Below are positions 9,001 to 48,464 of a DNA stretch of 64,000 bases, one piece after another (position 1 is the first letter of the stretch; each line of letters starts with the position of its first letter). Source of the DNA: Neoechinorhynchus agilis. Its lineage: Eukaryota > Animalia > Acanthocephala. The position numbers were made by a program, and so were the translations under genes. The notes under the pieces were generated by a model that was not told the DNA's origin, did not search any database, and saw only the letters and a program-made list of their open reading frames with translations. Location: the NCBI GenBank assembly GCA_051530055.1, contig CM121343.1, forward strand, positions 1,954,389-2,018,388, written 5' to 3'.

Positions 9001-12000
9001 ACTGCATCACCGTCCAAATTTCGAGCTTTCAGCGAATACATTCCTTCGTCAGTCAATTTGGATCTTATGATTTCGAGGCTAATGCTTCCAGTGTTCGGAT
9101 TTTGCTGAATTTTATATTTGGGCCCGTTATTTAGAACCTTGTTCCCTTTCATCCACTCTACTTTTGGAAACGGACTAGCTTCTACTTTAGCATCGACAAT
9201 CAGATTTTTATCTGTACAGGAAGCGCTTTGAATGAAGAATAAAAATGTGAAAATTACAACCTTTTTGAACTTTAACATTTTGAGGAGGAATTAAGAAAAC
9301 TGGAGCTTTTGAGATCGACCGGGTTGCTAAACATGGATTATACATCGAGTGTGGCTCTAATAGTTCACAACCTTTATGCAAATTCGTTTCGCCGTTGTTG
9401 TCTTCTATTTTTAATTTTATTAATGTATTGTAAACAGTTTCATACCTTCAGCCGTAATCTTGATCTGAAAGGAATCCAGGCCGAACTCATTTTGCAGGAT
9501 GCACTTGTATAGACCGGATTGTATCTTGTTGAATGAAGAAAACGACAATCTAGTTGTATTTTCTTTGGTTACAATTTTTACGTTCTGTATCAATTATGAT
9601 TGTTACATGAATAATCGAAATATTCGGTAACCTTTTGTGAATCAATCGCTTTTCCGTTCTTTGTCCATTCAACGATAATAGGTTGATCACCCAAAAACGT
9701 TCCTTCAATCTCACATGACGCTCCGGTTTGAACAACCTAGGAATTATTTTGCTTTAAAGGTCAAACATTCGAAGTCAACACGAACTTTATCCTTTGGCTT
9801 GTTAACAAATTTTGGTGGTGTCCCAATAGACTTTATCTTAACATGCTCTAAAAATATAATAGGTAAATTAATTTATAAATTTGTTCAAATGGTTTTAAAC
9901 CTTCTGTTATTCGGAATCGAATTTTAGCCGAGTTACTGTTTGCACTTTGTGCGATCATCTCGTAATCGCCAACGTCCGCAAGATTTGGATTTAATAAGTT
10001 CATATAAAAGCATGTAATTCCATCCTTAATGATTTTTTGATCCAGATCTACTTTATTAGTGACCTTATAATTGATAACAATACCTAATGGTGTGTTTATT
10101 TCCATGTCAAATTTACCTTTTTTAACTGTACGCCCTCTTTGTACCATGAAGAGGAGGGTGCCTTACCAGAAGAAAATTTACATTCGATCTCCACACGAAG
10201 GGTCCCATCTGAATTCAAAACTTCAGCATTTTGAAGCTCAAGCATTTCTGATTCCTTTATCCTAAAATGAAATACGTTGTAGTTCAAGAAAGCATCAGAA
10301 CATCGTTTGAACGTATACAGAAACTCAATGAAAATAATATGACAATAAAGCACTTTCATTGCGCCGATAAAGGAAAGGTAATAGGAGAACTCGTGGTCTT
10401 TTTTTTGGAACGACCAAAAATGTCATTTAAAACGACTTCTAGCCTTTCTCTTATAAAGTTCCAATATTGGTTGTTTTCTGGCGGAAAAATTGAAATGATT
10501 TTATTTCAAAATCCGATATTTCGGCACAATCTTGTGCTTGTGTCACATATTTAAAAACTTACAAGCAACCTCGATAAAGGCAGAAGATTTATCCGAAATA
10601 TCGGATTTTAAAATAATTTCTCCTCCAGAAAACAACCAATATGAACAATTCAATCTTCAAACAGTTCCAATATCTGTGGGAATTTTGTTTAACGATAAGA
10701 TTGCACGATACATAATAATGAGATTGCAGCGAGCATGGTTTTCATGCTCTAAAGCTATAGCAGTTATCGTTTCATAAGATAGTAAATGAACAAACGAGTA
10801 TTTAATGAAAAACATTTCGCCACCATATTGTATAAAAAATGCTTTAAAGGTTTAAGCTTGGTCGCATACCTATTTTTCGCTATAATCGTATAAGCAAAGG
10901 ATTCTCCGGACTGATTTGCTGCCGACAACTTATAGCAGCCTGCAACCTTAGGTGTCTATAAATTATCATATAGATCAGAGGTTCACTCATGCGTTGTTTT
11001 ACCTTGAACCGTAATTTAGCAATATGTTGCGCTCCTTCTGACTGCGAAGTGATCAAAATTTCTCTTCCATCTTCAATTTTTTCATCGTTTGAATTATACC
11101 AAATGAGTGTTGGGACTTCTTGACTGTACACCTGCGCTTCAATTACAGTATCACCCATCTTCAGATTTTTTATTCTCGCTTCATTCTGACTTGGTATATC
11201 GCCTCGAATAGGTACAATTCCTTTCGCTGCGTGCAAAAATGGTGTTTGACGGAATAAGGAATCGCTATTCAAACCATCGCGTTTCATATTAATTTTAAGT
11301 CCGCCGAATTGATTGATTACAAACAATGTATATTTGGATCCAGAATCACCAAGCGCTGGGGCCGGTAACTCAATTTGAACACCGTAAGTGTTTTCATCCG
11401 TTTGTGCTTTCGAAGCAAAAATTGAAGCTTTAGTAACCCGCTTTCCATTTTTTTGAAAATCAACGATAAAATCTAGAATGCATTTGACTACTAAATCCAG
11501 CTTGATGATGTTGTCATTGTTAGATTTTGTGGATATCGGCCTCGATGTTAAAATGGGCAATGGACCACTAGATGGCCTCCTGTTTAGTTTCATACGCAAT
11601 ATGATTTCCCAATTAAATTCTCATGTGTACTAACCCGCTCACATCTATCGTTTGGAGGTCACAAGAGTACGATTTTTCAAAACTGGTCCCTGTAATGGTT
11701 GCATTGTATTGACCAATATCATTATCCTCTACATCATATATCGCCAATATACTTGAGTAGGATGATTTGCCTTGAATGAGTCTAAATATCAAATCTTAGA
11801 ACAAAACAGTGAGATTTAATCGATCTTACAAAGTCCTATATCTATCCGTTTTGCTTAAATCAGCAGTTCCTTTGTTCAGCGTCCATTTACATTTGGGTTC
11901 GAAATTCGATGAAAACGTAAAATTTATGACTGCAATGTTTTTGAAAAAAACTTGAAAAGTTTTACTGATAACTTCAACGCCTTCGTTTGTCCCGCGTTGG

Positions 12001-13480: not shown

Positions 13481-14365
13481 TATAAAATAGATAAGATCAC
13501 GACTGGCCAAAGACTGTCAAGGGAATTAGCGTAGAACAATGGAAGTGGAATTCTGCGTCCTGTTTGGATAGAAAGCGTTTTAGGTCTTAGATAATTCTAA
13601 GATAAATCGACCCGTTCTAATGTCCTTTTGTAGAGTCGACTGCTTTTGCTGCTTAAGAAATGCCTTAAAAGTTTCGGCCATTGAACAAATCTAATGAGAA
13701 AACTCAAGTGACCAAAATAAAAAAACCCAAGATTCCATTGAAATTCGAGGGAAGAAGTGAACGTGGTTAAAAGTACGTTTATAAGAAATCGCAGCAGTCA
13801 AAATCAGAAGTCATACTCCTGCGCTTACTACGACGATATAGATTTATCGATCCAAAATAATAGCGGCCAAGAAGAGAAGATAATCTGATTGATTTTTGGA
13901 GACAAAAGTTGACATTTAAATCTGATAAAACTTGTGATGTTTATATATAGGAATTCCGTGCTAGAATTGTTCTTTGTAAATCCATACGCGATCTTATAAA
14001 CCCACAAATTTTTTAATCTGAAGGTCCAGAACCATGCTGGAGATATAGATCTGAATTGTATACGTGACTCAGGATATAAAATCGCAAAAATAAAGAATTT
14101 GGCTGTACAAATCTCGAGAAAATCCATACCGGGATGTTAAGTTTTGACTTGTGGTGAACATAATTACCCGGTTAAAAATGATTTTATTCTTCTGAAATAT
14201 TTCGAAAGAGGAAACCTCGCCTCACCTCAATCATTGTTTGCAAGTGTTTACGACGTTTCACCTTAATTTTTCATATAGAAAATCAGCGTAACTGTAGACC
14301 AATCGTTCACTTTTGATGCTACTTTAATATTATGTACACTCGCATGCCACCATAAGCAACGTCAA

Positions 14366-16100: not shown

Positions 16101-16584
16101 TTTGGACCACCAATACTCTCACAACCACCACCAATGCTGCTGCTCTTTAAGTCTAAAGGCGGTGAAAGTACGGCTAAATGAGAAGTGATTTTCAATGTTG
16201 AGTGAAGGTTGTTTTCTCAAACAAAACACAAACGCGGTCCTTTGTATTTGTGGGATCAGGACGCACGGATGGCGTGACCGCTAAGACATTATGTGCGTAT
16301 GCAGGCGATTCCATTTGTAGGCTTCCTTTGAATCAAAGTTCCAAATGAATGATATATCTTCTCATTAATCAGTTTACTTGATTCTATGTCGGCTAGCGCG
16401 GTCTGTTTCAAACGAGCCGCTCAACTAGTAAGAAACGTAGCCGCATACTCCTAGACTTCATTAATCTCTTAGAAGGTGATGAGCAGTGTTGTCCATCGCT
16501 TCCTAACCATTATGGAGCCTTCGTTAAGTTATCCACTCACTTGACCGCTAAATAAAATGGTCGACGGAGACGTACATTCACTTT

Positions 16585-19560
16585 TACAGTTGGCATTTTA
16601 GCCTCCTTTAGCGAACCAGAACAATACTTTGGCAGTTTTTTTAACTCATTTGCGGCGAATAAACCCAAAAGTTACATCCTTCCTTTAACAAGTGACACTT
16701 TTTCAATTATGGATACTCAATTAATGAATTCTATTCGCTTCTAGTTACCATTTTAGCCTCCTTTAGCGAACTAGAACAATACTTTGGTAATTTTGCACTC
16801 ATCTGCGTCGGATAAACCAAAAAGTTACATCCTTCCGTTAACAAGTGACACTTTTTCAATTATGGATTCTCACTTAAAGAATTCTATTCGCTTCTACAGT
16901 GACCATTTTAGCCTCCTTTAACGAACCAGAACGATACTTTGGCCATTTTGAACTCATCTGCGTCGGATAAACCAAAAAGTTAACCCTTTCCGTTAACAAG
17001 TGACATTTTTTCAATTATGGATACTCAAAGAATTCTATTCGCTTCTACAGTTACCATTTTAGCCTCCTTTAGCGAACCAGAACGATACTTTGGCCATTTT
17101 GCACTCATCTGCGTCGGATAAACCAAAAAGTTAACCCTTTCCGTTAACAAGTGACATTTTTTCAATTATGGATACTCAAAGAATTCTATTCGCTTCTACA
17201 GTTACCATTTTAGCCTCCTTTAGCGAACCAGAACAATACTTTGGCAATTTTGCACTCATCTGCGTCGGATAAACCAAAAGGTTAACACCTTCCGTTAACA
17301 AGTGACATTTTTTCAATTATGGATACTCAAAGAATTCTATTCGCTTCTACAGTTACCATTTTAGCCTCCTTTAGCGAACCAGAACAATACTTTGGCCATT
17401 TTGCACTCATCTGCGTCGGATAAACCCAAAGGTTAACACCTTCCGTTTATAAGTGACATTTTTTCAATTATGGATACTCAAAGAATTCTATTCGCTTCTA
17501 CAGTTACCATTTTAGCTTCCTTTAGCGAACCAGAACAATATTTTGGCCATTTTGCACTATTCTGGCGGATAAACCCAAAGGTTAACACCTTCCGTTTATA
17601 AGTGACATTTTTTCAATTATGGATACTCAAAGAATTCTATTCGCTTCTACAGTTACCATTTTAGCTTCCTTTAGCGAACCAGAACAATATTTTGCCATTT
17701 TGCACTCATCTGCGTCGGATAAACCAAAAGTTAACACTCGTTAACAAGTGACATTTTTTCAATTATGGATACTCAGAATTCTATTCGCCACAGTTACCAT
17801 TTTCCTTTAGCGAACCAGAACGATACTTTGGTAATTTTGCACTCATCTGCGTCGGATAAACCAAAAGGTTAACACCTTCCGTTAACAAGTGACATTTTTT
17901 CAATTATGGATACTCAAAGAATTCTATTCGCTTCTACAGTTACCATTTTAGCCTCCTTTAGCGAACCAGAACAATACTTTGGCCATTTTGCACTCATCTG
18001 CGTCGGATAAACCCAAAAGTTAACACCTTCCGTTTATAAGTGACATTTTTTCAATTATGGATACTCAAAGAATTCTATTCGCTTCTACAGTTACCATTTT
18101 AGCCTCCTTTAGCGAACCAGAACAATACTTTGGCCATTTTGCACTCATCTGCGTCGGATAAACCAAAAAGTTAACACCTTCCGTTAACAAGTGACATTTT
18201 TTCAATTATGGATACTCAAAGAATTCTATTCGCTTCTACAGTTACCATTTTAGCTTCCTTTAGCGAACCAGAACAATATTTGGCCATTTTGCACTCATCT
18301 GCGTCGGATAAACCAAAAAGTTAACACCTTCCGTTTACATGACATTTTTTCATTATATATCAAAGAATTCTATTCGCTTCTACAGTTACCATTTTAGCCT
18401 CCTTTAGCGAACCAGAAATACTTTGGCAATTTTGCACTCATCTGCGTCGGATAAACAAAAAAGTTAACACCTTCCGTTAACAAGTGTCAAAGAATTCCAT
18501 TCGCTTCTACAGTTAAAATTTTAGCTTTCTTTAGCGAACCAGAACAATACTTTGGCAGTTTTGCACTCATTTGCGGCGGACAAAACCAAAAGTTTGCATC
18601 TTCCGTTTACAAGTGACATTTTTTCAATTATGGATACTTAAAGAATTCTATTCGCTTCTACAGTTACCATTTTAGCCTTCGTTAGCGAACCAGAACGATA
18701 CTTTGGCCATTTTGCACTCATCTGCGTCGGATAAACCAAAAGGTTAACACCTTCCGTTTATAAGTGACATTTTTTCAATTATGGATTCTCAAAGAATTCT
18801 ATTCGCTTCTACAGTTACCATTTTAGCCTCCTTTAGCGAACAAGAACAATATTTTGGCCATTTTGCACTCATCTGCGTCGGATAAACCAAAAAGTTAACA
18901 CCTTCCGTTCACAAGTGACATTTTTTCAATTATGGATATCGAATTAAAGAATTCTATTCGCTTCCACAGTTACCATTTTAGCTTCTTTTAGCGAACCAGA
19001 ACGATACTTTGGTAATTTTTCACTGATCTGCGTCGGATAAACCCAAAAATTAACACCTTCCGTTAACATGTGACATTTTTCAATTATTTATACCAATTGA
19101 AGAATTCTATTCGCTTCTACAGTTATCATTTTAGGCTCCTTTAGCGAACCAGAACAATATTTTGGCAATTTTGCACTCATTGGCGTCGGATAAACCAAAA
19201 AGTTAACACCTTCCATTAACAAGTGACATTTTTTCAATTATGGATACTCAAAGAATTCTATTCGCTTCTACAGTTACCATTTTATCCTCCGTTAGCGAAC
19301 CAGAAAATACTTTGGCCATTTTGCACTCATCTGCGTCGGATAGCCCGAAAAGTAAACACCTTCCGTTAACAAGTGACATTTTTTCAGTTATGGATTCTCA
19401 CTCAAAGAATTCTATTCGCTTCTACAGTTACCATTTTAGCCTCCTTTAGCGAACCAGAACAATACTTTGGCCGTTTTGCATTCATCTGCGTCGGATAGCC
19501 CGAAAAGTAAACACCTTCCGTTAACAAGTGACATTTTTTCAATTATGGATAGTCAATTTA
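16585..19560. repeat. 151-bp tandem satellite, about 20 copies
   Basis: The unit 'ttaccattttagcctcc...cgcttctacag' recurs at 17051, 17202 and 17353 (period 151). Edge units are more diverged. Confidence 0.95.
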
Positions 19561-20524
19561 AGAGTTTTAATGGCTCTGAAGAGCTTACAAGCATTATTCA
19601 AAGCAGCCGTCCTTGTTTAGTTGTCGAAAGGCGGTTGCAGCTTTGTCATCATTTCGCCCTTAGATTTTAAGTGATTTATGTGACTATTTTCAAGCGAAAA
19701 ACAATTAAGTTTCAATAGTTTCGTCATTTGTTTTATTACTATATTTTCAATGGCAATCCACGGCAAAAAAATGCACCCTGCTAATATTCATCGGCTGACG
19801 TCGATTATTATAAACTATAAAGCCTAAATCGATCATAATTAGTCGTCTTTTTAGGATAAGAAGGTTCAACACATAAGTCCATTCATTCGACTACAAAGTT
19901 CAATTAAATTCGTGTTCTCATTTGTTGTATAAACCTGTAAATGCAAACGATGGCAAAATATTGGCAACAGTTTCACTTTGTTAAGCTGTAAATTATTGCC
20001 ACTTTTTGCGTTCTAGACAGCATAGCTAAAGCATGAACATTTAAATATCAGCCAAATCGTTATAAATTCCTTCTGACACTTTGTGTAATGCAACTCTTCT
20101 ATCCCAGCATTGCAATAGATTAGTGGAGTACTTTTATGAGTACTAAGAAACTACTTTGTCCCGGCAGCATTGAAAATTTTCAAAAAGTGGTCCTAATGGA
20201 ATTTGTTTGTAAAATTTCACAATTCTTAGATACATAGAAGAAGCTAATAGTTAGCTGCAAAGCGAACGGTCTATACGTTTATTAAAAAAAGTGTCCAGAA
20301 TTTAATCGAGGCAATGACCTCCTGGAAAATCCCTTTGACACCACAAATATTTTGGATTTAGCGCACGACTAATGCGCGATTAAATCGATTTCATGCTTTC
20401 GCTATTTTATCCTTGATTTTTAACTCGCCTAGAATTCGATTTATCAGTCCAAATGAGATTTAAAAAACACTACAGATCACAATTTAAATTATGGTGATCA
20501 TAACCATATGATAAAACATATTTT

Positions 20525-21720
20525 ATTTAGTTGAAATATTTCACAGCGAAACCTCGCCTCGTGATAAAGAGAAAATCCTTCGGGATGATAGATTTGGCGA
20601 CGTGGTGATCAAAATCCACGGGTAAAAAATATTTTATCGATTTGTAATATTTCACGACGAAGCTTCGCTTCATCAGCAAGAGAAAATCCTTCGGGATGAC
20701 AGATTTAGCGATGTGGTGAACACAATCTCCGGGTAAAATATATTTTTTGATTTGTAATATTTCACGCCGAAGCCTCACCTCATCAGCAAGAGAAAATCCT
20801 CCGGGGTAATAGATTTGGCGATGTGGTGATCAAAATCCCCGGGTAAAAGATATTTTATCGATTTGTAATATTTCACGACGAGGCCTCGCTTCATCATAAA
20901 GAGAAAATCCTTCGGGGTGTTAGAAATCACGATGTTTTGATCATTATCCCCGAATAAAAGATATATTATCGATTTGTAATATTTCACGATGAAGCTTTGC
21001 TTCATCATAAAGAGAAAATCCTTCGAGGTGTTAGAAGTCGCGATGTGGTGATCATTATCCCCGGATACAACATATTTTATCGATTTGTAATATTTCACGA
21101 CGAGGCCTCGCTTCATCATAAAGAGAAAATCCTTCGGGGTGTTAGAAATCACGATGTTTTGATCATTATCCCCGAATAAAAGATATATTATCGATTTGTA
21201 ATATTTCACGATGAAGCTTTGCTTCATCATAAAGAGAAAATCCTTCGAGGTGTTAGAAGTCGCGATGTGGTGATCATTATCCCCGGATACAACATATTTT
21301 ATCGATTTGTAATATTTCACGACGAGGCCTCGCTTCATCATAAAGAGAAAATCCTTCGGGGTGTTAGAAATCACGATGTTTTGATCATTATCCCCGAATA
21401 AAAGATATATTATCGATTTGTAATATTTCACGATGAAGCTTTGCTTCATCATAAAGAGAAAATCCTTCGAGGTGTTAGAAGTCGCGATGTGGTGATCATT
21501 ATCCCCGGATACAACATATTTTATTGATTTGTAGTATTTCACGAAAATGCCACGCTTAATCATCAAGAGAAAATCCTTCGGGGTGATAAATTTAGCGATG
21601 TGGTGATCATAATACCCGGGATAAAATATATTTTATTGATTTGTAATATTTCACGATAAAGCAACGTTTGATCATCAAGAGAAAATCCTTCGGGAGGATA
21701 GATTTGGCGATGTAGTGATT
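20525..21720. repeat. 111-bp tandem repeat with a near-identical 222-bp A/B higher-order core
   Basis: Identical ORFs at 20997 and 21219 (offset 222). Alternating 37-aa translations on the minus strand. Diverged monomers at both ends. Confidence 0.93.
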
Positions 21721-22074
21721 TTTTCTTTTGGCACACATCCCACCGATCCGGTTCAGGGCTAATAAATTATCAGCCGTGAGGCCACGTGTAGATACTAAAA
21801 AGTAACCGGCTAACCAGACTTCAAAAAAATGAAAATAAAAATATTTTATTAATTTGAAATACGTTTGCATCATCCCGGAGGATTTCCTCTAAATGATTGA
21901 CAGATCATAATATTTTGGAACCACGCCTGCGATTTGTTTTTTATTGCGGAAAAACTGAAGGAATTTATTAACTCCGATATTTCGGCACGATCGTTTGCCT
22001 TTATCAAGATACTCACGGCACAAGATTGTGCAACTTCAAACACAACTACGATTATTTTTCAACTAAGTTTCTGC

Positions 22075-22279
22075 GAACGTGGGGAAAAATTATATATCCA
22101 AGATGACTTTGATTGAAATATTTCGTCGAATCACGCTGGACTTCTTTAGTCAATTATTACTTGTAAGTATTTAAATAATTTAAAAACTTACAAGCAATAA
22201 TTGACTGAAGAAGTCCAGCGTGATTGGACGAAATATTTCAATAAAAGTCATCTCGGATATATAATTTTTCCCCACGTTC
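22075..22279. mobile_element. 205-bp fold-back (palindromic) element carrying a hammerhead motif
   Basis: Arms of ~100 bp (gaacgtggggaaaaattatatatcc... / ...ggatatataatttttccccacgttc) with about 6 mismatches and a loop of a few nt. Confidence 0.75.
22200..22242 (+). ncRNA. Minimal type-I hammerhead ribozyme motif
   Basis: ATTGA (stem I) - CTGAAGA - A - GTCCA/gcgtgat/TGGAC (stem II) - GAA - ATAT (palindromic stem III) - T (cleavage site) - TCAAT (stem I, 5/5 pairs). Confidence 0.7.
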
Positions 22280-24076
22280 ACATACTCATGGATTTTATCT
22301 TTAACTAAGTTTCTCTAACTTGCTGGACTATGTTCTGGACTTTATCTGGAAAATAGGAAATATTGTATTATTTTGCTGGGTTTAGGGTTTCTGTTCTTAG
22401 TTCACAAACTGGTATAATGTGAGACTACAAATTTCAGTCAACTGGAAACTGCTCCTTCACGTATTTGCATCAATCTTTCAAAAGGCAAGCAAAGCAAATA
22501 ATGGGGACACCGGTTAACCGATATTGTGTATTCCTTTATCATTATTTGGTCTATACTTGGTGCTATATCTCTAAACCAAATCGTGCCGCTACCTCATTAT
22601 GGAAACCTCTGAAACCCGATCCACTTGGACGTAATGACTTCCATTTTATACATAAAAGGATATTCCTTCCGATTAAATTGTCTCAGTTTTACGAACGTAG
22701 AAATCGCAGCTCGGAAAAACAGGTTAAATAGCTGGTCCAGCAGTCCACAACCAGCATCCACTCGTGAATTACTTTAGAATAAAAGTAGGTAACTCAAAAA
22801 GCAAGAAAATTGCTGAATTTGAAGGTGAGACAATTTCCATAATTCGACTAAGTTTCTATTTTTCTGCATGTCCGCCAGTTCAATGAAACCCTCGAGCATT
22901 CTAATAAACCACCGGGCATTTTTACACCGCAAAAACGGGTTGCACTTTACGTCACAAGCGCGGTGAATATTAAATATCGTATTTAAACGTTTGCCTGATT
23001 GAGCGTAGGTTAATAATCTTTCAATATTAGTGTTTGCAGTTAGTCTGATATTTACGTCGGAAGCTATAAGCTCGTTAGATATTTAGCGTTGTCAATTACG
23101 CCGTAACGACTTGTTGAACGTTTTTGCTTTTCCAAACGTATTGTTTTCGATCTTGCCTACAACTTCGTTAGATTGAGTTTTGAAACAATGAGCGTTAAAG
23201 TAGGCTTCGACATGATCTTTTGAACAGCTCAACCACTCACGTGCTCATTCTCAACCGCAAAAGCCACGCTCAGCGCATTATGCCACCTTTACGGTCTGAC
23301 GAACTACAGCTTGGAAAAATAGCAATGTCAATTGGTTCCCTCATGGACATCGCATTCGTACAAGATTGATTAGGAACCATATCATGACAGAGGATCTTAT
23401 GTAATTCCTGCTGTTATCATTGCTAACTTTTTAGAGGCACAGTATCCTTGACTTTTAAGGGATCAAAACCGCAAAGGCGGGAAACGGCCAATCTGTGGCT
23501 ATAAATTCGTGGCTAAGCAGCTGATGATAGTAGGTTTATCAATTTCGAAAATTCTTATAAGTTGCTCCGTACATGCTTTCTAAAAAATTCACAATTCCAT
23601 ATCAACGATGATCTCTCAAGTTAAGGGATCAAAATCCAATTCACAAATTCCTCTTTTTTCCAGCCCGGCCCCTCCGTTTATGTAAAAATGCCAATATCTG
23701 ACTTAAAATCCAAACTTGCTTTATCCACAACAAAAAGTTGTACTAGTTTTCAGTACAGGATAATAAGCAAGGATGATAGTCCTTCCCATTATGTTTTCAA
23801 GATATTCCATAAACACGCCGATTAGAGCGATATCACACGGTGGTCGTGCTCAAGGTAAATGTATATTTTCCGATAAGATTGAGGGTACACGCGAGTGTGT
23901 GGGTATGCATATAAACGCCCTCGAATAATAAGAGGCCCGGGTTTCTACATTTGATTCCAGATACGATACATGGCTGAATCGCGTTTACTCGAGTCGGGTG
24001 TCCCAGAAGAGCGACAACCAATTCAGTAAGTTCCACGTTTTTTATCATCGGATTCTCTCACATTAAACTAATTTAG

Positions 24077-25898: not shown

Positions 25899-28800
25899 AT
25901 GCCATCTAACGGAGACGATGAAATCTCGTTTAAACACACCAGCTCATTCGAACGAATGAAATTTATCGAAAGTCGTCTGAGGGACCCTCAATTTAGTGCT
26001 AACATCAACTGTCTGATGGTTAGAATTTGCCATAAACACTTTTCTTATTCGCGTTTTGTAGGATGCTCTTACTTCAATCGTACATGACCGGTGCACGTGC
26101 TCATTGTCTCCAATTTACGGTCATCAGCGTCCTCGATTACAACAAATCAATACTCCTGTCGCATGGACCAGCTCATCGTCGAATTCAAAATGCCTCGCAA
26201 CTACTGGCGCGGAATGCATTGGAGGAGACTGTTATTATAAAAATAGCCACCAGGAAAAATACTGGCAGAGAGGTGAGTCTTCATGTTATAATCAATCTAT
26301 AACATCCGTAAGGTGAACATTTAAAAATCACAGTAAAATAATTTCGATTTCAAATTAGCTTTGCGCAATACATTGCAGTCACTGTCCTTATTAATGCAAT
26401 AAATTTCTATCTGCGTATTTATGGTGAAAAAGTTAAAGGATAAGTGTTTTATTCGCAGCGAATAAAACACTTAAACAACCTTGTAAAATTATTGTTTAGA
26501 AATCTTCACCCGCGGTAAACGATTATTTCGATTAAAGATGTTTTGAACCTCTTCGGATTCATCATCAGCTTGTTAGTTAGTATCCGACGAGGTTCGAAAC
26601 GTCTTTAATCAAAATAATCATTTACCGCGGGTGTAGACTTCTAAACAATAATTCCAGTCACATTCTCCGGTACCTCACATATCGACATTTTCAACCTTGA
26701 TAAAGGCACGAGATTGTGCTGAAATATCTGATTTAATAAATTCAAGAGTGAATAGTTCAATACTCTACCTCTCACTAATATGAGATAAATATGAAAATTA
26801 GCAACGACATTAATCTTTTTTATCTACTAAAATAGCATTGTACTCATTACCAGTATTTGGGCTTCCACAACCAACTTCTTACTTTTACAGTTGGGTAAGT
26901 GGTAACTCTGCAATTAATTTATCGTTCTGAAGTCTTGTTAATCATACATTAATAATGCCTTTTTAGTGAAGGACGCAGTAATACTTCTAAATAACTGCCG
27001 GATGAATACTCAGGATTTTACGTTTATTAATTTTATTGGAAAAGGTGCATTTGGAAAAGTGCACCTTGTCAGACACAAAGAATCTGACCAGCTTTATGCG
27101 ATGAAGGTGCTTCGAAAATCTACAATGATAAGGAAGGCGAACAGCGCTCTTTTTTGGGCGGAACGTGAAATCATGGCCTTCGCGAACAGCGAGTGGATTG
27201 TAAAGTTACATCACGCTTTTCAGGATTTCGATCATCTGTATATGTTAATGGATTTTGTACCGGGTGGTGATCTTGTTACTATAATGTCTAATCACGATCT
27301 TACCGAATCCGACGTAAAGTTCTACGTTGCCGAAGTCATCATGGCTGTCGAGGCTGTCCATTCCCTCGGATATGTTCATCGAGATATTAAGCCAGACAAT
27401 ATGCTAATCGATGTTGATGGACACATTAAATTGGCAGATTTTGGAACCGCTGCTCAGGTCAGCATTCACGATGGCCTCGTGGACTGCATTGTAGCAGTCG
27501 GTACTCCCGACTATATAAGTCCTGAAATTTTGCATTCCCAATCAACCTCACTACCTTATGGACTTGAAACTGACTGGTGGTCCGTCGGAGTACTGGCATA
27601 TGAACTGTTAGTGGGCGAAACGCCGTTTTATGCTGAATCGTTAGTTGGGACGTACAGCAAAATAATGAACCACGAGAAGTATTTAAAATTCCCGGACTCT
27701 CTAATTATATCTGATAATGCCAAGCATCTCGTTAAGTCTTTTCTACAAGATCGATCAACGCGGTTAGGAAAAAACGGAATAAAGGAAATAAAGGGACATG
27801 CGTTTTTTCAAGATAGTAGTTGGACGTGGGACAACATTAGGAGCACTCAGCCGCCTGTGCTGCCTAAACTTAGCTGCCCTGAGGATACTAGTTATTTTGA
27901 GGAATGTGGAGGAAGCGACGATATTGCACAAGATAGTGAATATTTTTGCTCATGGATGCATTACAGGTCATTGCAGGGTGAATCTTCTTTTGAAAAATAA
28001 TTCAGCAATGAGCGGTTCGTTACTTAAAGTACAATCTTTAATTTGTAAGCAAGCCTAAGTTAAAATAATTTCTTAAAAGGTCATTAGGTCCTTCAATTTA
28101 ATTAATTGCCTTATAGTAAAGCCTAGCGCTCTTTGTTTTGCAGGTCGAAAATCACCATTAGATCAAAATACAATTTTTAGCGATATTTTTGAAGGATTCT
28201 ACTCAAACTTCTCATCCACTGGTCTTAAATTTTTAGAACAGTTTATCCTTGAATGCAATGAGGAGAAGTTTGCTAAATAATTTTTGTATTGAATATAATT
28301 CAGCTTCGCTTTTTGAGTATTCCATAATATCAATATACTCTTGATGTCCTCCTGGCTAATTAAATCCATGAACAATGTACAGCATAGATGGTGAATGTAG
28401 CTTCGAGAAAAAATGCGGAGGCAAACGGGATACCGCATTGAACACTCACGGCGATGGAGAGTCCGACCTGTGTCTCTACTGCGCATTTGTGGGTTTCTCG
28501 TACTCATGTGATCAAACTCCGTTTGCGAATTTGGATGTCGAACCAAATACGGCACTCGATAACGTCGATCATGATAAGACAATTTGCAACGAAGAAGATG
28601 ATATTGACGACCGCTTTAATGGATCTACAATAACGGACAAAAGAAATGATTTTGAATATTCATACAGACAAAAGCACAAGAAATATTTTGAAAAGTGTGA
28701 ATTGTGTGAAGAGCTAACGAAAGAGATCGATGAATTGAAGCATGTTATAGAAGCGCTTGCTGATTGCGAAAAGAAAGATTTATCTACGGATCCTCTAACG

Positions 28801-31331: not shown

Positions 31332-34300
31332 TGAAGTATCTTCACTCTTCATGATAAGTTTTATTAACGTTTTTTCAAAACCTGACCAACTGCAAAAACC
31401 AAAAACAAACGCACACACCCCCAAACATCGTTTGGTCATTATCGATCGGACGCGCAGTGCGTGTCACGATCGCTCACTATATAACATTTCTCCCCTCCTT
31501 AATTGAGACCGGAGGTGTCGCAATCGTTTAACCACTCAGGTCGACGTCGTATTCTCGTACTCCTTCGCAATGGGTCCGTGACATTGAATCCCCTTTCCGT
31601 CTCATTCGTTGGTTCATCATTGATGGGCTCATTGGGCGTTTGTTCCCCGTGCGGCAATTCCCCTGCCTTTGCTATGGCTACTGCTGGTCTCAGGTGATCG
31701 GCGTGTTTCCTCTCTATCCCTCTTTCGGTCCTAACTTCATAGGAGACGGGACCATTTCGATTCTCCACTCGCCCTGAACACCATCGTCGATCATGTTACG
31801 TCTTGCACCACACCTGCTCGTCCTTCTCGAACTCCATCCACTTTGAGCCTTGGTCGTGCTTATCCTTCCATTTTTCTTTGTTTTCCACCCTAGTGTCGTG
31901 GTCGTCCTTGTGAAGGTTATCGAATAGTACTCGAATTGGGCGTCCGAACATCGCCACAACAGGACTTACTCCGGTCGTCGCATTTGGACAGTTTCTGTAG
32001 CTTAATAGAAAGCTTTGTAATTGTTTTTTGTGCGCGCATCGAGGGAAACATCTGAAAACCCTCTCTTTTACTGTTCGAACAAATCGTTCGGCTTGACCGT
32101 TAGTACGAGGGTGGTATGGTGTCCAATAAATAGGTTTGCTTCCATTACTCATTAGGAAATCTTGAAACGTTTCGGATCGGAAGCTTGAACCGTTATCCAT
32201 GACCACCTTTTTTGGCAAACCGAAATGGCAGAATAATCGGCGCATATGAGTGACGAGGGTCGTCGCATCAGTCAAGCGCACTTCGATTACCTCTGGCCAC
32301 TTCGTGAACGCATCGACCACGATGAGCCACATTGTGTTCTGCACTGAACCAGCGTAATCTATGTGGATCCACTCCCATGGAGTCCTCGGCACATCCCAAG
32401 GTATCATGTCCACCTCTGGTTGCTTCCGTTGCCCTTCTTGACACGCCTGACATAGACTCACATAGTCTTCGATCGCTTTATCCAATCGCGGCCACCAGAC
32501 GTACATCCTGGCCAAAGACTTCATCGACGTACACCCGGGATGGCTGATGTACATTTTGAGAACCCAATCTCGCAACGCCTCTGGGATAATCATCCTACCC
32601 AGCCAAAATAGGATGTTGTTTTCGACCGATAGTTCTCCCTTCTTTTCGTAATATGTCCGTAAATCATTCGAAATCACTTCGGGCCATTGTGTCTTGATAT
32701 ACTTACACACCCTCGTCAGCACAATATCGTTTCTTAAACTCCGTTTCAACATCTCTGCGTTTATGAGTTTTGAATCGTCACAATATATTAGATCAATTTC
32801 ATTGACAAAACTCTCCACTGGTTCATTTGAAACTTCTGGTATTCTTGATAGTGCATCGGCATATACATTCTCTTTGCCTTTCATATATTCGATGGTGTAA
32901 TCATATTCGGCCAACACAATCGCCCATCTTCGCAAACGGTTACCATGTATCTGATTCAAGTCTTTTTTATGGCCGAATAACTACGTCCGAATAAGAAGTG
33001 GTGAAATTTCTTTATTCCAAACAATATCGCCCCGGCTTCTTTACCTATTGTTAAATAATTTTTTCCGCAGGTGATAAAGTTCTTGACGCATAAGCGATCG
33101 CTCTCCAGTTTCTCCCTTCCTGCTGCAAGAGTACCGCCCAAACCCCACTTCACTCGCATCACACGACAGGATTACCTCTTTCTCAACAGCATACGGCATC
33201 AACACTTTCGGATGTTCCATCAACTTTTTCGCTGCCATGAAACTATCTTGTTCTATTTTCCCCCATCTCCATGGAATCTTCGAACTGGTCAGTCTGTGAA
33301 GCGGACTACACACAGCGTGCAAATGTGGCAAAAATCGTTCATGGTGTCCTGCTGCTCCGAGGAAGGCTCTCAATTGCGTTCGTGTTTTCGGAGGTGGAAA
33401 ATTTATCATTGACCGCAATTTTGCTTGTGGTGCTCTTATTGTCCCCGATTCCCAGATCATTCCTAAAATCTCAACCTTTTCCTGGAGAAAACAGCATTTT
33501 CCTAACTTCAGTGTTAATCCTGTGTCTTCCAATCTCTGCAGAACTCGACGTAGGTTGTCTATGTGTTGCTCATCGTCGTTTCCGCTTATCACGATATCAT
33601 CTAAGTATACTGTGACATTCGGAATATCTTCTAATAACTGATTCATAAATCGCTGAAATATGAAAGGCGCTGAATAGATCCCAAATGGCAATCTCGTATA
33701 TTGATAATAACCCATAGGCGTTGTAATCGTCAATAGTTTTTGCGATTTTTGTGATATCGGTAACTGTAGGTAGGCATCCTTCAGATCGAGTTTGCTACAT
33801 TTCCATCCGGAACCGATCTTGCTTAGTATATCCTCGATTTTCGGAATTATACAACTGTCTCTTTTAAGATATTCGTTTATAGTGACTCGAAAATCACCAC
33901 ATACTCTGATCCTGTTATTCGCTTTCTTCACGAGAACGATCGGTGTGGCCCATTCCAGCGGTTCTCTCGTCGGATCCACTTTCCTTAGAACGCCGATTGC
34001 TTGAAGCCTGTTCATCTCCTCCAGTAAACATTCAACCACCGGAAGAGGAACTCTCCGTGCCGGAAAATTTTTGGACTCGCATCATCTCTCACTGACAATT
34101 CAACTTGATATCCCTTGATTTTCCCCAACTCATTCGAAAACAGTTTAGCATATTCCTTCTCTGGTTTCATCTCCATCTGATTTATTGGGGATACCACACC
34201 GATCCCCGTCCCTTGGTTTCCTCTCCAGATCGCATCTAACTGCACCGGAACTATACCAACAGCAGATATCCAATTTAGTCCACACAATGCTCTATCCATG

Positions 34301-35569
34301 GTTCGCACCACGGCAACTTCGACCATGGCTCGACGTCCCTCGAATTCCACCTCCATTTGACCAGTTCCCACAGTGTCGAGTGCCTGTCCACCATATGCTT
34401 TCAGGCGAAGACCCTCTCTAAGCGGTTTAGATCCTAATTGTGTCTAAATCCGCATCGGGATCACCGAGACACCGGCACCGGTGTCATATTCCATCTCCAC
34501 TGATCTTCCATTGACTTTAAGAATTAGCGTCCACTTTTGGTTTTGTCCAACAGCGTTGATGTTTCTAATTACTTCTTCCTCCTCTCCAATCTGTTTTACC
34601 TGCTTGACCTGCGATCGGAAACAATTCCGTGCAAAATGGCCAAATCTTCCACAGTTGAAACATCTTCCTCCTCGGCTGTTTGGAAATGTCTGAGAGTTTC
34701 CTCCTCGAAAAATACACGGCTCGTTGCTTTTATGAACTTTTCCACATCGATTATAGATGGTTCTTCTTCGATCATCGGCATGATTCCACTTCTCGAAGTT
34801 TCTCGCCACTACCCGGTCCTTCGTTTGTCTTACCTCCGCTATCACTCGTTCCATTGGGATGCATAGATCTAGGACTTGTTTCATCGATACAATTTTTTTC
34901 CTGTATCTCGTCTGGCCAACGGCACCTTATCTCCGTCTCGATTCGGGCATCGTTCAAACCAATAGCGAAACGATCCCGTAACCGTTCGTCCAAGTTTTCC
35001 CCATAGCTACAGCACACACTTAGCGCGCGCAATCGATCTGCAAACTCGTTGAAAGACTCACCATCTTTTCTATTGGCTTTCGAACGCAAAACGGGCAGCA
35101 AATATTGTCGTAGTTGGCGTAAGTAGATCGGTCATTGACTGAATAATTTCCTGGTAACCAAGATTACCGACATCCTTAGGAAATACATGTCTTTCCAATT
35201 TGCTTAGGTTAGTATCACCCATAAACGCCAATAGCAGCATCGCTTTCGCTTCGGACACCCGTTTCCCGATTCCGCGGATACCTTTTAACCATAGGTGTCA
35301 ATCTAAACGACGAATGCACGTTGTCCATCCTACGCCCGTGGATTCCGAACACGGGTCCATTCGGAACAGTTCTAACTTACGGTCCAAATCCTGAATCCCA
35401 CCGCTGTCACCAATTGAAGTATCTTCACTCCTCATGATAAGTTTTATTAACGTTTTTTCAAAACCTGACCAACTGCAAAGCCCAAAAACAAACGCACACA
35501 CCCCCAAACATCGTTTGGTCATTATCGATCGGACGCGCAGTGCGTGTCACGATCGCTCACTATATAACA
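31332..35569 (-). mobile_element. Full-length Ty3/gypsy LTR retrotransposon, Mag-like, frameshifted gag-pol
   Basis: LTRs 31332-31486 and 35415-35569 (155 bp, 3 differences, TG...CA). TSD CTATC on both sides. PPT at 31487-31499. PBS at 35393-35412 complementary to a tRNA-Leu-type 3' end (gaatcccaccgctgtcacca). Gag CCHC, protease YDTGAGVS, RT YLDD, RNase H and integrase with GPY/F-like tail, spread over several frames. Confidence 0.95.
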
Positions 35570-35660
35570 CTATCCTTTAAGTACTTTTTTCGTGCACTCA
35601 TCGCGAATAACCAAATATAAGTAATAATTTTCAGATTTTATCATTGCCCAAAATGTTATT

Positions 35661-35990
35661 TTGAGCAAAGTGCAAATTACCAATACTATTTACGATAATG
35701 TTCAAGTAGCAATGCACAGCAAATCTAACCACAGGAACGCGGACGACATTATAATTTGCGCAACTAAAGCAGTTATTTTATTGGACATGAACAAGTCTTT
35801 TGATCTTGTTGATCGACCTGTGATCTATAAAGTTCTTAATCATTTCAAAGTACCGAATAATCTCATAGACAAAATAAAGCCTCTCTCGGAAACTATATAA
35901 TATTTTCTTGATTTGAATCCGGGTAAGAACAAATAATTCCTTAGATACGGAGTGTCATCGGCCTCTCCACTTTAACAAAAAACGGTTTGT
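35661..35990 (+). pseudogene. Degenerate non-LTR (RTE-like) reverse transcriptase relic
   Basis: LLDMNKSFDLVDRPVIYKVLNHFKVPNNLIDKIK matches the non-LTR RT 'D..KAFD.V....L...G+P..LI..IK' segment. Confidence 0.5.
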
Positions 35991-36049
35991 TTTAGTCTCC
36001 ACTTTGAGCGAACGACAATGCAAAACATCGATATTTTCATCCTTTGCTT

Positions 36050-38577
36050 TATGCTGATAACTTTATTTTCCTTGTTTATAACAAAAGTGGGGAATTTCGT
36101 GCAGGTATAATTGAGAGTATCATCTTAAAAATACAAAGCATTTGTCCAAATCAAATCCAGCAGTGAAAAGAGTAAACAAGTCTAAATCCCGCCAAGCAAA
36201 ACAGCAGATGCAAAGCAAATTTTAATAAATAAATTAAATATGAACAGGTTTTAACATAACATGAAAAACGTTAACATGGACCTTATGACGTCGTTAATGG
36301 TCACTACATAGGCACCCCTCAAGAAGGTTCTTCCGTTTTTTTTGCGAGGTCTGCCTCGTTTAGGAGGTTCAGTGAGAATGACGGGTGATGTTGGATCGGT
36401 ATACGCTTGTTTGAGGCGATCTATCGGAACGTTCTCGGGTTTTCCACCGAGATCGATCATGAAAAACTTTTCGTTGCGATTAAGTACTTTGTAAGGTCCG
36501 GTATCCGGCGCCTGTATAGGATTCCCATGATGACCGCGTCTGACAAAAACGAACGATGCTCTGCTGAGAGCATTTGGTACAAACGTCGTCAATTTAACAT
36601 GGTTCTCAACGGGCGTGGGAGCAAGAGATTTAACTTTATTACGTCGCCGTTGTAGATGAGTGTGAGAATCGACTTGGCTAAGTGAGGAATTAAGAAAATC
36701 GGCAGCTATGTTGATGGCACCTTCATATACATGCTCTGCTGCCGAGGAATCAACGTCGGCTTTGGGCGCGGTGCGAATTCCTAACAAAATCCAAGGCAAT
36801 TCGTCAATCCAGTTGTTTCCGCAGAGGCGAGCTTTCAAAGCCGATTTCAGATGCCTGTGGAATCTTTCTACCATTCCATTGGATTTAGGATAATACGCGG
36901 TTGTACGGTGGAGCTTCATTCCTAAATGTTCTGAGATTGTTCTCCACAGCTCTGATATGAACTGCCGTCCTCGATCGGAGGTGATGTCGTTAGGAATACC
37001 AAAACGAGCTATCCATTGGCTGATAAGTGCTATTGCACACGTTACGGCGTCGGTATTATTTAAAGGAATCGCCTCGGGCCATCGAGTATATCGGTCTATC
37101 ACGGTTAATAAATGAGTGAAACCTTGTGATGCCGGTAGCGGACCTACTAAATCTATGTGGATGTGATCAAATCGACGTTGCGGAGGTTCGAAAGTAGAAA
37201 GCGGTGCTCGTATGCGTCTTTGAACCTTAGCCTTTTGACATCCGATGCATGAATGAACCCAGGCACCAACATCCTTTGATAAACCAAGCCAAACGTATCT
37301 TGTTTTAACCAATTTACGGGTGTCCATGATGATGGTACCAACGGTCTATCACGGCCAGTCGAAATGTCACACAAAATAGTTTGTCCTGTGCCATTGAAAG
37401 GAATTTCCTTCAACTGTAGCGAGGTATTCGCTGAACGATATGCCTGGATGTGTTGATCAGACTTTTGATCTTCTGCCATCGCTTCAAACGATATTCCTTC
37501 GGAAATACTGGCTAAATAATCAACGCGGGACAATGCATCGGCAACTTGGTTCTCTTGTCCACTAATATGTTCGATATTGGTCGTGAACTCAGATATATAA
37601 TTCAAATGTCGTTGTCGACGGGCTGACTAAGGATCCGAAACTTTTGTCATCGCATAAACTAAAGGTCGATGATCAGTATAAATCGTAAACGATCGGCCCT
37701 CGACGTAATATCGAAAATGTCGGACAGCAAAATACATAGTCAGAAGCTCGCGATCGAAGGTGCTGTACTGTTGTTCAGGTTTACGCAGTTGTTTGCTGAA
37801 GAATGCCAGCGGCTGCCATGAATCGGACACATTCTGCTGTAGAACAACGCCAATAGCGAACTCAAATGCATCTGTACTGAGAGAGATTGGTGCGTCGGTC
37901 ACTGAATGTGAAAGCATCGTTGCGTTTGCTAGAACGGCTTTAGTTTTTTCGAATGCTGAAGCCATTTCAACTGTCCAAGAAAAACTTCGTAGATTTATTT
38001 TACCAGAAAACGCTTGGTAGAGCGGACGCATCGGACGGGCTGCCAAAGGGATGAAATGATGATAATAATTTACCATACCATCAAATCCTTGCAAAGCTTT
38101 GGTGGATGTTGGAGGAGGGAAGCTGCGAATCGCGCTTACTTTATCTGGCAATGGTACTGTACCCCGTCCACTCACACGGTGTCCTAGGAAACCGATCTGT
38201 TCTACCCCGAACTCACACTTATCTGGGTTCAGAACGAGGCCGTACTCCGAGAGTCGATCGAACAATGTTCGTAGATGTTTCCTGTGCTCAAATCGATTTG
38301 AACTCGCGATCAGTATATCATCTAAGTAGACGAAAGCAAAATTCACTCCTGAACAAACCGTATCTATTCCTTACGTCGACCACTAAACCTGAGTGTCGAA
38401 GGAAATCAGCGCCTAGGATAGGGTGTTTAACCGCGACAAGAGTGAACATCCATTCCGTCTGAGTTTTACCAAAATTCAACTGCAATAGCTTGTTGCCGAA
38501 TGTTGAGATTGTTGAAGCTGTAAGTACTCTGCTGGAGTGTTTGGTCTGTTTATCGAGTGTTGTGGCTGGAAGGATGA
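36050..38577 (-). mobile_element. 5'-truncated Ty3/gypsy element (CsRN1-like) with an internal deletion between protease and RT
   Basis: Protease C-half (HPILGADFL) is joined directly to RT FVYLDD, followed by RNase H (YSTFDRELL) and integrase (HIHIDLVGPLP...PPKRGRPRK). PPT, then TGTAGTG LTR start at 36308. The LTR end is not defined. Confidence 0.85.
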
Positions 38578-40077
38578 GTGGTTTCCTCAGGAGCGGATTT
38601 CGTTTCAAGATTGAAATCGTCTTGGAATTCCCAGTATAGGATGCTGTCGGCAGATGTGATCTCCCTCTTCACCAAAATTCCTGTCGATGTGGCAATAGAT
38701 CTCGCAGTTCCTCTCCTGTCCACGAACACTGAATGGAATTTAACTAATAGTGACTGGCGAAAGCTATTGCAGTTTTGCACCAGATTCTGCAACTTCCAGT
38801 TCAACGGCATCGACTATGATCAGAAAGATGGAGTAGCAATGGGCAGCCCGTTAGCCCCTGTGCTTGCTGAGCTAGATATGCGGCACTGGGAGGACGAACA
38901 TTTGCCGTCGATACAGGGGGTTAATATCTGGTTCAGATATGTGGACGACACGTTCCTGTTGATCGACCCTTCAGAGACTAAAATGAATCGCCTTAAACAT
39001 GAACTGAATGGAAGGGACGACAATATTCAGTGGACGATCGAGGAGGAGGACCATGGTAAGTTTCCGTTCCTGGATGTGTGGATATACCGATTAGCCAGTG
39101 GAAACTACACGACCAGCGTGTACCGAAAGAGAGGTATACCAGTGGGCCTTGTGCCATGGACATCAGCCCAACCTCGCAAATACAAAAATTCGAGGATTAG
39201 GTCACTCATCCATCGTGCTCTTACACATTGTAGCAACGCTAAGTTGTGTAACGAGGAGATTGATTACCTAAAGTACATATCAGGTCGATATGGTATCAAG
39301 CTGGATAATATCATGCTTGTTGATCCTGTTAAACAGCCTTTCCGGATAAAGATTATTGATTTTGGGTGGGCTATCACTCCAGATCCAACGGCGAACTATA
39401 CGTGCATTCAAAATCGAATTTACCGTGCTCCCGAAATCATAATCGGATACCAATTCATCGAGTCAATCGACATGTGGAGTCTAGCCGTAACTCTGGTGAC
39501 ACTCTATCTCGGATGCTATATGTATCCCGGATATTTTGAGTTCGAGCAACTCAAATACATTACGGACACTCAAGGACCTCTTCCCATGGACATGCTCATT
39601 CGCGGAACAAAAACTGCGCAATTTTTCGATGTATATAGGCAGAATTCCGGCGACCTTGTATTTGAGTTAAAGAACGTCAACTCCTACAACGCTGAAACGG
39701 GTCTTTTATTTCGGGAACGGCGACGATACCAACTTCATTCATTGGATGACCTTGCTATTCTGGTTTTGCGTGGCGAAAATATTGGCCCAAACGCCGCAGC
39801 CCAGGAACTTGACCGTCTATGTTTTACTGATTTGATGAAGAAAATGCTGACACTCGATCCACACGTTCGAATGAGTGCAATTCTTGGATTAGAACATCCA
39901 TTTTTGACTTTGGATCATTTATTCGCTGAACCCGAATACCTTCAAGGGAGCCGCAATGATATGAAGGTTTGTCCAATTACAAGCTACCATCACAAACGTC
40001 TTCAGGACGAACAGAGACCGTTACTGAATACCTCGTGGCTTATTGAAGATTATAGGGGAACTCAGCGGAATATTTGA
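38578..40077 (+). CDS. Chimeric ORF: Penelope-like RT core/thumb fused in frame to the C-terminal half of the HIPK-like kinase
   Basis: About 239 aa of PLE RT (ADVISLF, GVAMGSPLAP, FRYVDD, FPFLDV) run into IKLDN...IDFG...RAPE at 39294. The kinase part is near-identical to 51265-52038. Confidence 0.8.
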   Translation: MVSSGADFVSRLKSSWNSQYRMLSADVISLFTKIPVDVAIDLAVPLLSTNTEWNLTNSDWRKLLQFCTRFCNFQFNGIDYDQKDGVAMGSPLAPVLAELDMRHWEDEHLPSIQGVNIWFRYVDDTFLLIDPSETKMNRLKHELNGRDDNIQWTIEEEDHGKFPFLDVWIYRLASGNYTTSVYRKRGIPVGLVPWTSAQPRKYKNSRIRSLIHRALTHCSNAKLCNEEIDYLKYISGRYGIKLDNIMLVDPVKQPFRIKIIDFGWAITPDPTANYTCIQNRIYRAPEIIIGYQFIESIDMWSLAVTLVTLYLGCYMYPGYFEFEQLKYITDTQGPLPMDMLIRGTKTAQFFDVYRQNSGDLVFELKNVNSYNAETGLLFRERRRYQLHSLDDLAILVLRGENIGPNAAAQELDRLCFTDLMKKMLTLDPHVRMSAILGLEHPFLTLDHLFAEPEYLQGSRNDMKVCPITSYHHKRLQDEQRPLLNTSWLIEDYRGTQRNI

Positions 40078-48447: not shown

Positions 48448-48464
48448 ATTACAAGAAATGTATT

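Follow-up and report, generated by a model that had tools for sequence, protein, structure and literature searches.

Does the hammerhead motif carried by a near-perfect palindrome in the genome of the acanthocephalan Neoechinorhynchus agilis belong to a working ribozyme gene, or is it what remains of some other process? The palindrome lies in a stretch of 64,000 nucleotides (assembly GCA_051530055.1, contig CM121343.1, positions 1,954,389 to 2,018,388; hereafter the window, in whose coordinates all positions are given), at a site that the assembly gene calls place between an HMG-box gene and an aquaporin gene, 1.6 kb upstream of the latter, whose coding region begins at 23871. The intergenic position proposed by an earlier reading of the letters alone (the sequence-only reading) is thereby borne out. 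An exon of the aquaporin gene, 2 kb downstream, matches an N. agilis protein with 100% identity. The palindrome is probably a piece of a Penelope-like element (PLE) insertion and not a free-standing ribozyme locus, and it is most likely a dead insertion rather than a working ribozyme gene. Its probable origin is retrotransposition by a PLE, or by a short non-autonomous element using PLE machinery, of which it would be the relic; the sequence-only reading missed this insertion structure. The published N. agilis genome comprises 46.2 Mb, and the genome paper leaves Penelope elements unmentioned.

Repeat search and base-by-base comparison resolve the palindrome into two arms of 105 nt each, arranged around a one-nucleotide centre and spanning 211 bp in total.

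22072-22176, minus strand: left arm, a roughly unit-length copy of a hammerhead-bearing element with its 3' end outward (left); inverted repeat, 105 nt, 93%
22177: palindrome centre, a single base flanked by the self-complementary ATTTAAAT at 22169-22176
22178-22282, plus strand: right arm, the same hammerhead-bearing unit as the left arm, with its 3' end outward (right)

The arms are complementary at 98 of 105 positions, the seven mismatches falling at 22074/22280, 22100/22254, 22111/22243, 22128/22226, 22147/22207, 22159/22195 and 22169/22185. The sequence-only reading had recognized the palindrome and called it near-perfect over 205 bp, a length that covers only the stretch inside the outermost mismatch (22075-22279). 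Both arms place their 5' ends at the centre and their 3' ends, reading ...CCCCACGTTCACA, outward, generating a head-to-head arrangement in which both copies terminate at the identical base beside ATTTAAAT. The structure is an inverted repeat throughout, with no distinct internal region, and contains no open reading frame (ORF).

Each arm carries one copy of a hammerhead motif, intact on the right and mutated on the left, as sequence and predicted structure agree.

22200-22242, plus strand: intact minimal type I hammerhead, identified from sequence, the fold of the isolated segment, a descriptor scan and covariation
22112-22154, minus strand: mutated hammerhead copy, with CTAAAGA (G5 to A, plus-strand base 22147) and a C-C mismatch in helix II (plus-strand base 22128)

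The right-arm motif reads ATTGA-CTGAAGA-A-GTCCAG-cgtga-TTGGAC-GAAA-TAT-T-TCAAT. Specifically, helix I is a 5-bp pairing of ATTGA at 22200-22204 with TCAAT at 22238-22242, and the core CUGAAGA at 22205-22211 is followed by an extra unpaired A at 22212, directly after A9. Helix II joins 22213-22218 to 22224-22229 across a loop at 22219-22223 through five Watson-Crick pairs and one G-U pair, and is closed by G10.1-C11.1 (G22213-C22229). The GAAA segment occupies 22230-22233 and runs into the palindromic AUAU at 22233-22236, with no helix III, while U16.1 and U17 correspond to 22236 and 22237 and position the predicted cut between 22237 and 22238. The conserved core is thus complete (C3-A9, G12-A14, A15.1/U16.1 and H17=U), whereas the left-arm copy has lost it through the G5-to-A change. 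The stems, the cut after 22237, and the CTAAAGA and stem II mismatch of the minus-strand copy had all been parsed correctly in the sequence-only reading. Folded alone, the segment 22190-22250 shows helices I and II in its minimum-energy structure (-9.3 kcal/mol).

The descriptor for minimal hammerhead ribozymes (min-HHRs) is our own rendering of main-text features in PMC4209133 (Cervera & de la Pena 2014). It requires a helix I of at least 4-5 bp, CUGANGA with zero or one extra base, a G-C-closed helix II of at least 4 bp, GAAA, a palindromic 15.x-16.x segment and then H17. This descriptor has a single match in the window and none in 200 dinucleotide-preserving shuffles (both strands), and the right-arm motif is therefore not a product of chance; relaxing the descriptor by removing the G-C and palindrome requirements yields a mean of 0.01 matches per shuffle.

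The class to which the motif is compared was defined in repeats of metazoan PLEs, where many min-HHRs are single motifs from truncated elements and some are dual motifs on opposite strands, 100-700 bp apart; monomers show no cleavage and dimers weak cleavage only (PMC4209133). A passage of PMC6765202 attributes min-HHR dimer activity also to Lunse et al. 2017. As judged from its letters, the right-arm motif displays every published structural hallmark of the class: type I topology, an open helix I of 4-5 bp, absence of helix III, a palindromic 15.x-16.x segment (here AUAU), an unpaired nucleotide between A9 and G10.1, the G10.1-C11.1 pair, and no loop-loop contacts. The occurrence of single or dual opposite-strand motifs near truncated elements is likewise shared. 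Differences lie in helix II, which measures 5-6 bp here and 7-8 bp in the main Schistosoma families, in the lack of an ORF attached to the palindrome copy, and in the acanthocephalan host, N. agilis not being among the hosts covered in the compared literature.

The palindrome is embedded between direct repeats, with a short extension on one side.

22058-22072, plus strand: left copy of a putative target-site duplication (TSD), TTCAACTAAGTTTCT, a direct repeat abutting the left arm
22283-22299, plus strand: 17-nt extension TACTCATGGATTTTATC that separates the right arm from the right TSD copy, a candidate PLE tail present on the right side only
22300-22314, plus strand: right copy of the putative TSD, TTTAACTAAGTTTCT, 14/15 identical to the left copy

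Base 22072 is common to the left TSD copy and to the first base of the left arm, making this boundary ambiguous by 1 nt. Allowing at most two mismatches, the flanking 15-mer occurs only three times in the 64 kb, in every case within 800 bp of the palindrome. The layout of the locus fits a succession of TSD, inverted copy, direct copy, short tail and TSD. The arms have diverged at 6.7% of positions and the flanking direct repeat at 1 of 15. No empty-site paralogue of the insertion was found within the window.

An autonomous element of the same plan lies elsewhere in the window.

45963-48459: PLE with a full insertion signature, comprising TSD, tail and inverted end

Its ORF (46805-48370) encodes RVT_1 and GIY-YIG domains and is about 30% identical to PLE proteins of rotifers and other hosts, which are its nearest relatives. 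Homology to the N-terminal region continues in other frames back to about 46044, which points to a frameshift or a retained intron in this part of the element. A min-HHR of the form CTGAAGA-G-GGAGA..TCTCC-GAAA-ATT-T lies at 48379-48410 on the plus strand, 9 nt past the ORF stop, and an inverted twin of it occupies the minus strand at 46019-46087. The ends of the element form an inverted repeat of 75 nt with 99% identity (46002-46076/48375-48449), enclosed by a 10-bp TSD TACAAGAAAT at 45963-45972 and 48450-48459, and a one-sided tail of about 29 nt (45973-46001) is present on the left only. A search with the PLE ORF returned no N. agilis paralogues, transposons being masked in the annotation. 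In the same window, tblastn detects two further PLE reverse-transcriptase fragments, at 38578-39390, where the fragment is read through into a kinase-like ORF (38578-40077), and at 49107-49487; a paralogous, uninterrupted flank of the window PLE lies at 49500-49560.

This architecture corresponds closely to what is known of PLE insertion. Strong 5' truncation is typical of PLE copies, and many are directly joined by a second, likewise 5'-truncated copy in inverted orientation, most frequently head to head; the junction shows palindromes, and one end carries a tail of 30-40 bp (PMC8557442, Craig et al. 2021; PMC3846280, Arkhipova et al. 2013). Snap-back self-copying of cDNA has been proposed for rotifer Penelope elements (PMC3846280). 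In a 2024 study (PMC11167929), both strands of the target were cut and extended by a PLE protein, the tail was accounted for by two internal start sites of reverse transcription, and insertion in vitro did not depend on hammerhead cleavage. The palindrome shares with these insertions the adjacent inverted copy, 5' ends at the junction, a palindromic junction, direct-repeat flanks and a one-sided extension. The window PLE follows the identical plan with its TSD, tail and inverted 75-nt end, and a metagenome contig described below (L007) has a similar layout. Unlike the published head-to-head insertions, the palindrome has no sequence between the copies, and both copies stop at the same nucleotide.

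Further copies of the unit are dispersed in the window, where a looser scan reveals hammerhead-like motifs of the palindrome-type build at four other places: the window PLE described above and the first three loci listed here. The last locus listed is another decayed palindrome, outside that set.

53862-54038: second, older and decayed palindrome, whose arms match with nhmmer E=2.6e-4
14154-14256, minus strand: decayed single unit belonging to the 111-bp family, close to the HMG-box gene on its downstream side
20510-21719, with remnants to about 21897: 111-bp tandem array of about 11 units, 350 bp from the palindrome
10464-10642: decayed palindrome, 68% over 191 nt, with its centre at 10549-10568

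In the palindrome at 53862-54038, the left arm (minus strand) retains CTGAAGA-T-GTCC-aacgtaaa-GGAC-GAAA, the right-arm core having decayed to CTAG..., and local alignment of its arm with the arm at 22 kb gives z=7.1. The solo copy at 14.2 kb aligns with palindrome arm positions 3-98 (z=8.5) and belongs to the 111-bp array family (nhmmer E=5e-15). Direct comparison of the arm with the array by nhmmer is not significant (E=0.05 in a 450-nt search, core only), and homology between arm and array holds only through this solo copy. The array is organized as a 222-bp higher-order repeat with alternate units 100% identical, and its units carry, on the minus strand, ...CTGATGA/ATGATGA-N-stem-GAAATATT...; only two units, beginning at 20810 and 20700 and placed second and third counting from the left, keep CTGATGA, and most other units carry ATGATGA (C3 to A). 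The 17-nt extension of the palindrome weakly resembles the array segment upstream of the array hammerhead, a match that is not significant (nhmmer E=0.3). By sequence comparison, then, the palindrome arm is a roughly unit-length member of a dispersed hammerhead-bearing repeat family. An exact copy of the first 20 nt of the right arm (22178-22197), beginning at the same base, is found at 10549-10568.

The arms of the 10464-10642 palindrome ('family X') recur at 21932-22008, 66 nt upstream of the 22-kb palindrome, and at 26696-26743. They contain CGAAATAT and AATAAAATCAT, as do the hammerhead units, and comparison of the three family X loci with the hammerhead unit is suggestive and not significant (z<=3.0). 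Separately, an AATAAA-like string is located 5-10 nt past the hammerhead in the right arm (22240-22245), the window PLE (48414-48419) and the solo copy (14180s), and has become AATCAA in the left arm; either a polyadenylation signal or simple AT-richness could account for it.

Outside the acanthocephalan, near-identical hammerheads are linked to PLE ORFs. A search of metagenome contigs with the pattern CTGANGANGTCC-N(3-14)-GGACGAAATATT yields 18 contigs carrying ATTGA-CTGATGA-A-GTCC..GGAC-GAAATATT-TCA, and the helix I strand ATTGA and the following TCA, both outside the search pattern, are common to most of them. The hammerhead follows the ORF stop at 44 nt on contig L006, whose ORF is intact, encodes 802 aa and matches RVT_1 and, weakly, GIY-YIG; on L019 the same distance separates it from an ORF remnant upstream. 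Contig L007 bears two direct hammerhead copies 201 nt apart, preceded by an 80-nt inverted copy, with arms 96% complementary.

Both helices of the motif show covariation in an alignment of 18 hammerheads from the window and the metagenome contigs. Eight of the 11 helix pairs are changed on both sides, although the search pattern had already set four helix II pairs in the 12 metagenome rows, and a single member supplied the structure. Under the same conditions, the covariation score is 0.305, compared with 0.133+-0.023 in shuffles (0/500), and pairing cells amount to 75.6%, compared with 65.9+-1.7% (0/500); slid controls are lower throughout for both measures. At the fifth pair of helix II, for instance, the palindrome has A-U and the others have G-C or G-U, while pair 1.1-2.1 is U-A in the palindrome, C-G in L007 and G-C in the window PLE.

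Taken as a PLE-type insertion, the palindrome would consist of two copies of the element's 3'-terminal ~105 nt, joined head to head inside a 15-bp TSD together with a short one-sided tail, each copy carrying the minimal type I hammerhead of the parent element. In that parent, the ribozyme would process multimeric transcripts by pairing two copies through AUAU in place of helix III. The inverted pair could have arisen in either of two ways. Both cleaved target strands may have primed reverse transcription on the element RNA, producing two cDNAs that each ran to the end of a unit-length RNA; alternatively, the first cDNA may have snapped back on the palindromic ATTTAAAT at its end and copied itself. 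The termination of both arms at the same base beside ATTTAAAT suggests such a unit-length RNA or snap-back origin. Seven substitutions would have followed insertion, two of them disabling the left hammerhead while the right one kept every conserved nucleotide. Set against the relatives, the left arm looks like the derived one at no fewer than five of the seven differences, a bias that is not significant.

Several features weigh against this account. The shared end point of the arms misfits random 5' truncation of two independent cDNAs, and the putative TSD (15 bp) and tail (17 nt) depart from the 8-10 bp of rotifer PLEs and the usual 30-40 bp, respectively. A third copy of the flanking 15-mer, TTCGACTAAGTTTCT at 22843-22857, lies 543 bp to the right and, like the short tail, casts doubt on the reading of these flanks as TSD and tail. 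The metagenome relatives were retrieved with a pattern derived from the palindrome motif, so that their similarity at fixed positions is by design. Rfam hammerhead models give no match at gathering score across the whole window and none at E<=10 in a 551-bp search (21900-22450). These models also miss the hammerheads directly behind the PLE ORFs in L006 and L007, and therefore lack power for the min-HHR class, so the Rfam negative carries little weight. Finally, the palindrome copy has no reverse-transcriptase/endonuclease ORF, and comparison of its arms with the 3' end of the window PLE yields nothing significant (z=1.3). The PLE link therefore rests on the hammerhead type, the insertion architecture and the relatives in other organisms. 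Between the second and third copies of the 15-mer, the 528-bp interval 22315-22842 has no repeats in the window; considered as a further hammerhead-bearing insertion, it was rejected, showing no significant similarity to the arm on either strand.

The hammerhead at the palindrome probably does nothing now: the locus has no ORF, each strand supplies a single sense copy, and a long hairpin is predicted to out-compete the ribozyme fold. A transcript extending over both arms is predicted to form a 105-bp hairpin of -144.5 kcal/mol (plus strand) or -150.2 kcal/mol (minus strand), compared with -8.3 kcal/mol for the ribozyme fold, so in any such transcript the hairpin would swamp the hammerhead. Each transcript strand contains one sense hammerhead and one antisense copy, and therefore allows no intramolecular dimer, the form that the min-HHR class needs. 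The sequence-only reading, which regarded the locus as a ribozyme candidate, had overlooked both this competing hairpin and the reported inactivity of min-HHR monomers and weakness of their dimers. The segment from G12 to position 1.2, GAAAUAUUUC / GAAATATTTC at 22230-22239, is a perfect 10-nt palindrome, through which two right-arm RNAs are predicted to cofold into a homodimer of -28.6 kcal/mol, compared with twice -9.3 kcal/mol for the monomers. The predicted 10-bp GAAAUAUUUC duplex also pairs G12-A14, and therefore is neither the active fold nor, by itself, evidence of an active dimer. The last two bases of GAAATATTTC (TC), outside the search pattern, are retained in most metagenome relatives (the L002-L019 hammerheads). 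Moreover, there is no sign of selection on the ribozyme at this locus, because two of the seven arm differences fall inside the 43-nt motif and 2.9 would be expected if they were evenly spread.

An extension of the insertion account, which we regard as doubtful, is that the ~105-111-nt unit is an unusually small, PLE-dependent, non-autonomous 'mini-retrozyme' whose RNA would have its 5' end at AUUUAAAAAC. It is hinted at because the arm approximates one 111-bp unit, because the first 20 nt of the arm recur at the centre of the 10.5-kb palindrome, and because both arms end at the same nucleotide. Head-to-head dimers would form by priming from both target strands on the unit-length RNA or by cDNA snap-back and, when transcribed, would act as 105-bp double-stranded RNA hairpins feeding small interfering RNA (siRNA) silencing of the family. 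With units of 170-400 nt, the animal retrozymes reported to date (PMC7229834, Cervera & de la Pena 2020) would all be larger than such an element, if it is real.

A miniature inverted-repeat transposable element (MITE) or foldback DNA transposon, mobilized by a cut-and-paste transposase and having arms derived from, or having captured, a hammerhead sequence, would share with the palindrome its small non-coding nature, its hairpin potential and its flanking direct repeats. The perfectly symmetric structure around a 1-nt centre and the further short palindromes at 10464-10642 and 53862-54038 are also in keeping with such an element. In a MITE, however, distinct terminal inverted repeats enclose an internal region, whereas here the whole element is inverted repeat, and the long, asymmetric 15-bp flanking repeat with its one-sided 17-nt spacer is unlike the TSD left by a transposase. 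The 64 kb contain no further copy with these ends. The homologues include a solo single arm and a direct tandem array, which are not products of palindrome cut-and-paste, and a bona fide PLE in the same window is flanked by the same architecture. This origin is consequently unlikely. The sister motifs that a descriptor scan turned up in the array and at 46.0, 48.4 and 53.9 kb also led to rejection of the locus as a MITE or a chance motif.

Could the 105-bp stem itself be what is selected, the hammerhead being incidental to a functional small-RNA locus (a hairpin RNA, an siRNA or a microRNA (miRNA) precursor)? The great predicted stability of the hairpin on either strand invites this view, as do the many Rfam miRNA-precursor models that align to it (E down to 6e-15) and the rotifer small-RNA profiles tied to inverted PLE structures (PMC3846280). 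Yet the miRNA matches fall far below gathering scores (the best, MIR7533, reaching 74.4 of 230 bits) and occur on both strands, tracing the stem as they would for any long hairpin. The arms also diverge without compensation, G-U pairs being retained at only one (plus-strand RNA) or three (minus-strand RNA) of the seven mismatches. Selection for a small RNA is accordingly quite improbable, and siRNAs produced as a by-product of a transposon relic would be compatible with the PLE insertion rather than a rival to it.

An active retrozyme-like element, transcribed so that the right-arm hammerhead cleaves to release or circularize a small RNA, draws on the intact right-arm core, on the tandem array of related units 350 bp away, and on the circular RNAs that tandem type I hammerhead repeats give in many invertebrates (PMC7229834). 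The palindrome does resemble non-LTR (long terminal repeat) retrozymes and hammerhead satellites, such as newt satellite 2 and Schistosoma Sm-alpha, in its short hammerhead repeat units, dispersed and tandem, and in hammerheads thought to work as dimers; a PLE origin has been proposed for non-LTR retrozymes (bioRxiv 10.64898/2026.07.22.740005). Those elements, however, are direct tandem repeats of ~170-400 nt with canonical hammerheads, while the palindrome family has ~105-111-nt units with a minimal hammerhead. The copies at the palindrome are inverted, where two same-strand hammerheads are needed, and the hammerhead has no loop 1, which places the locus outside the retrozyme class. Members of the min-HHR class lack the loop-loop contacts of retrozymes and are reported inactive as monomers (PMC4209133), and the hairpin would sequester the motif. 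In the neighboring array, most units have a mutated C3, and the complete identity of alternate units indicates DNA-level amplification. Present activity of this kind is therefore very unlikely.

That a hammerhead-like string arose by chance in an ordinary local inverted duplication is barely credible: its helices are short and AT-rich and Rfam finds no hammerhead even at E<=10 in the 551-bp search, but the shuffles never yield such a motif, compensatory changes mark related motifs both in the window and beside PLE ORFs elsewhere, and Rfam misses the PLE-linked controls as well.

Two further repeat features lie in the window. A 151-bp tandem array (16576-19556; about 20 units with a 302-bp higher-order period) is situated between the HMG-box gene and the 111-bp array, and the scan found no hammerhead core in it. 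LTR-type retrotransposon fragments of integrase, reverse transcriptase and RNase H occupy 31796-37327 on the minus strand, just downstream of an AGC-kinase gene.

The palindrome does not overturn current understanding; it adds an acanthocephalan example to an already large catalogue of Penelope-associated minimal hammerheads. A single 64-kb window displays the full range of forms: besides the autonomous element with its inverted ends, there are a tandem array, a solo copy and two head-to-head dimers, one exact and the other decayed. Annotators of invertebrate genomes would do better to treat palindromes of this kind as PLE insertion scars than as MITEs, miRNA genes or stand-alone ribozymes, and curated Rfam hammerhead models miss the min-HHR class altogether. 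The exact symmetry of the arms provides a small, concrete clue to how PLE cDNAs are joined, through a unit-length template or through snap-back.

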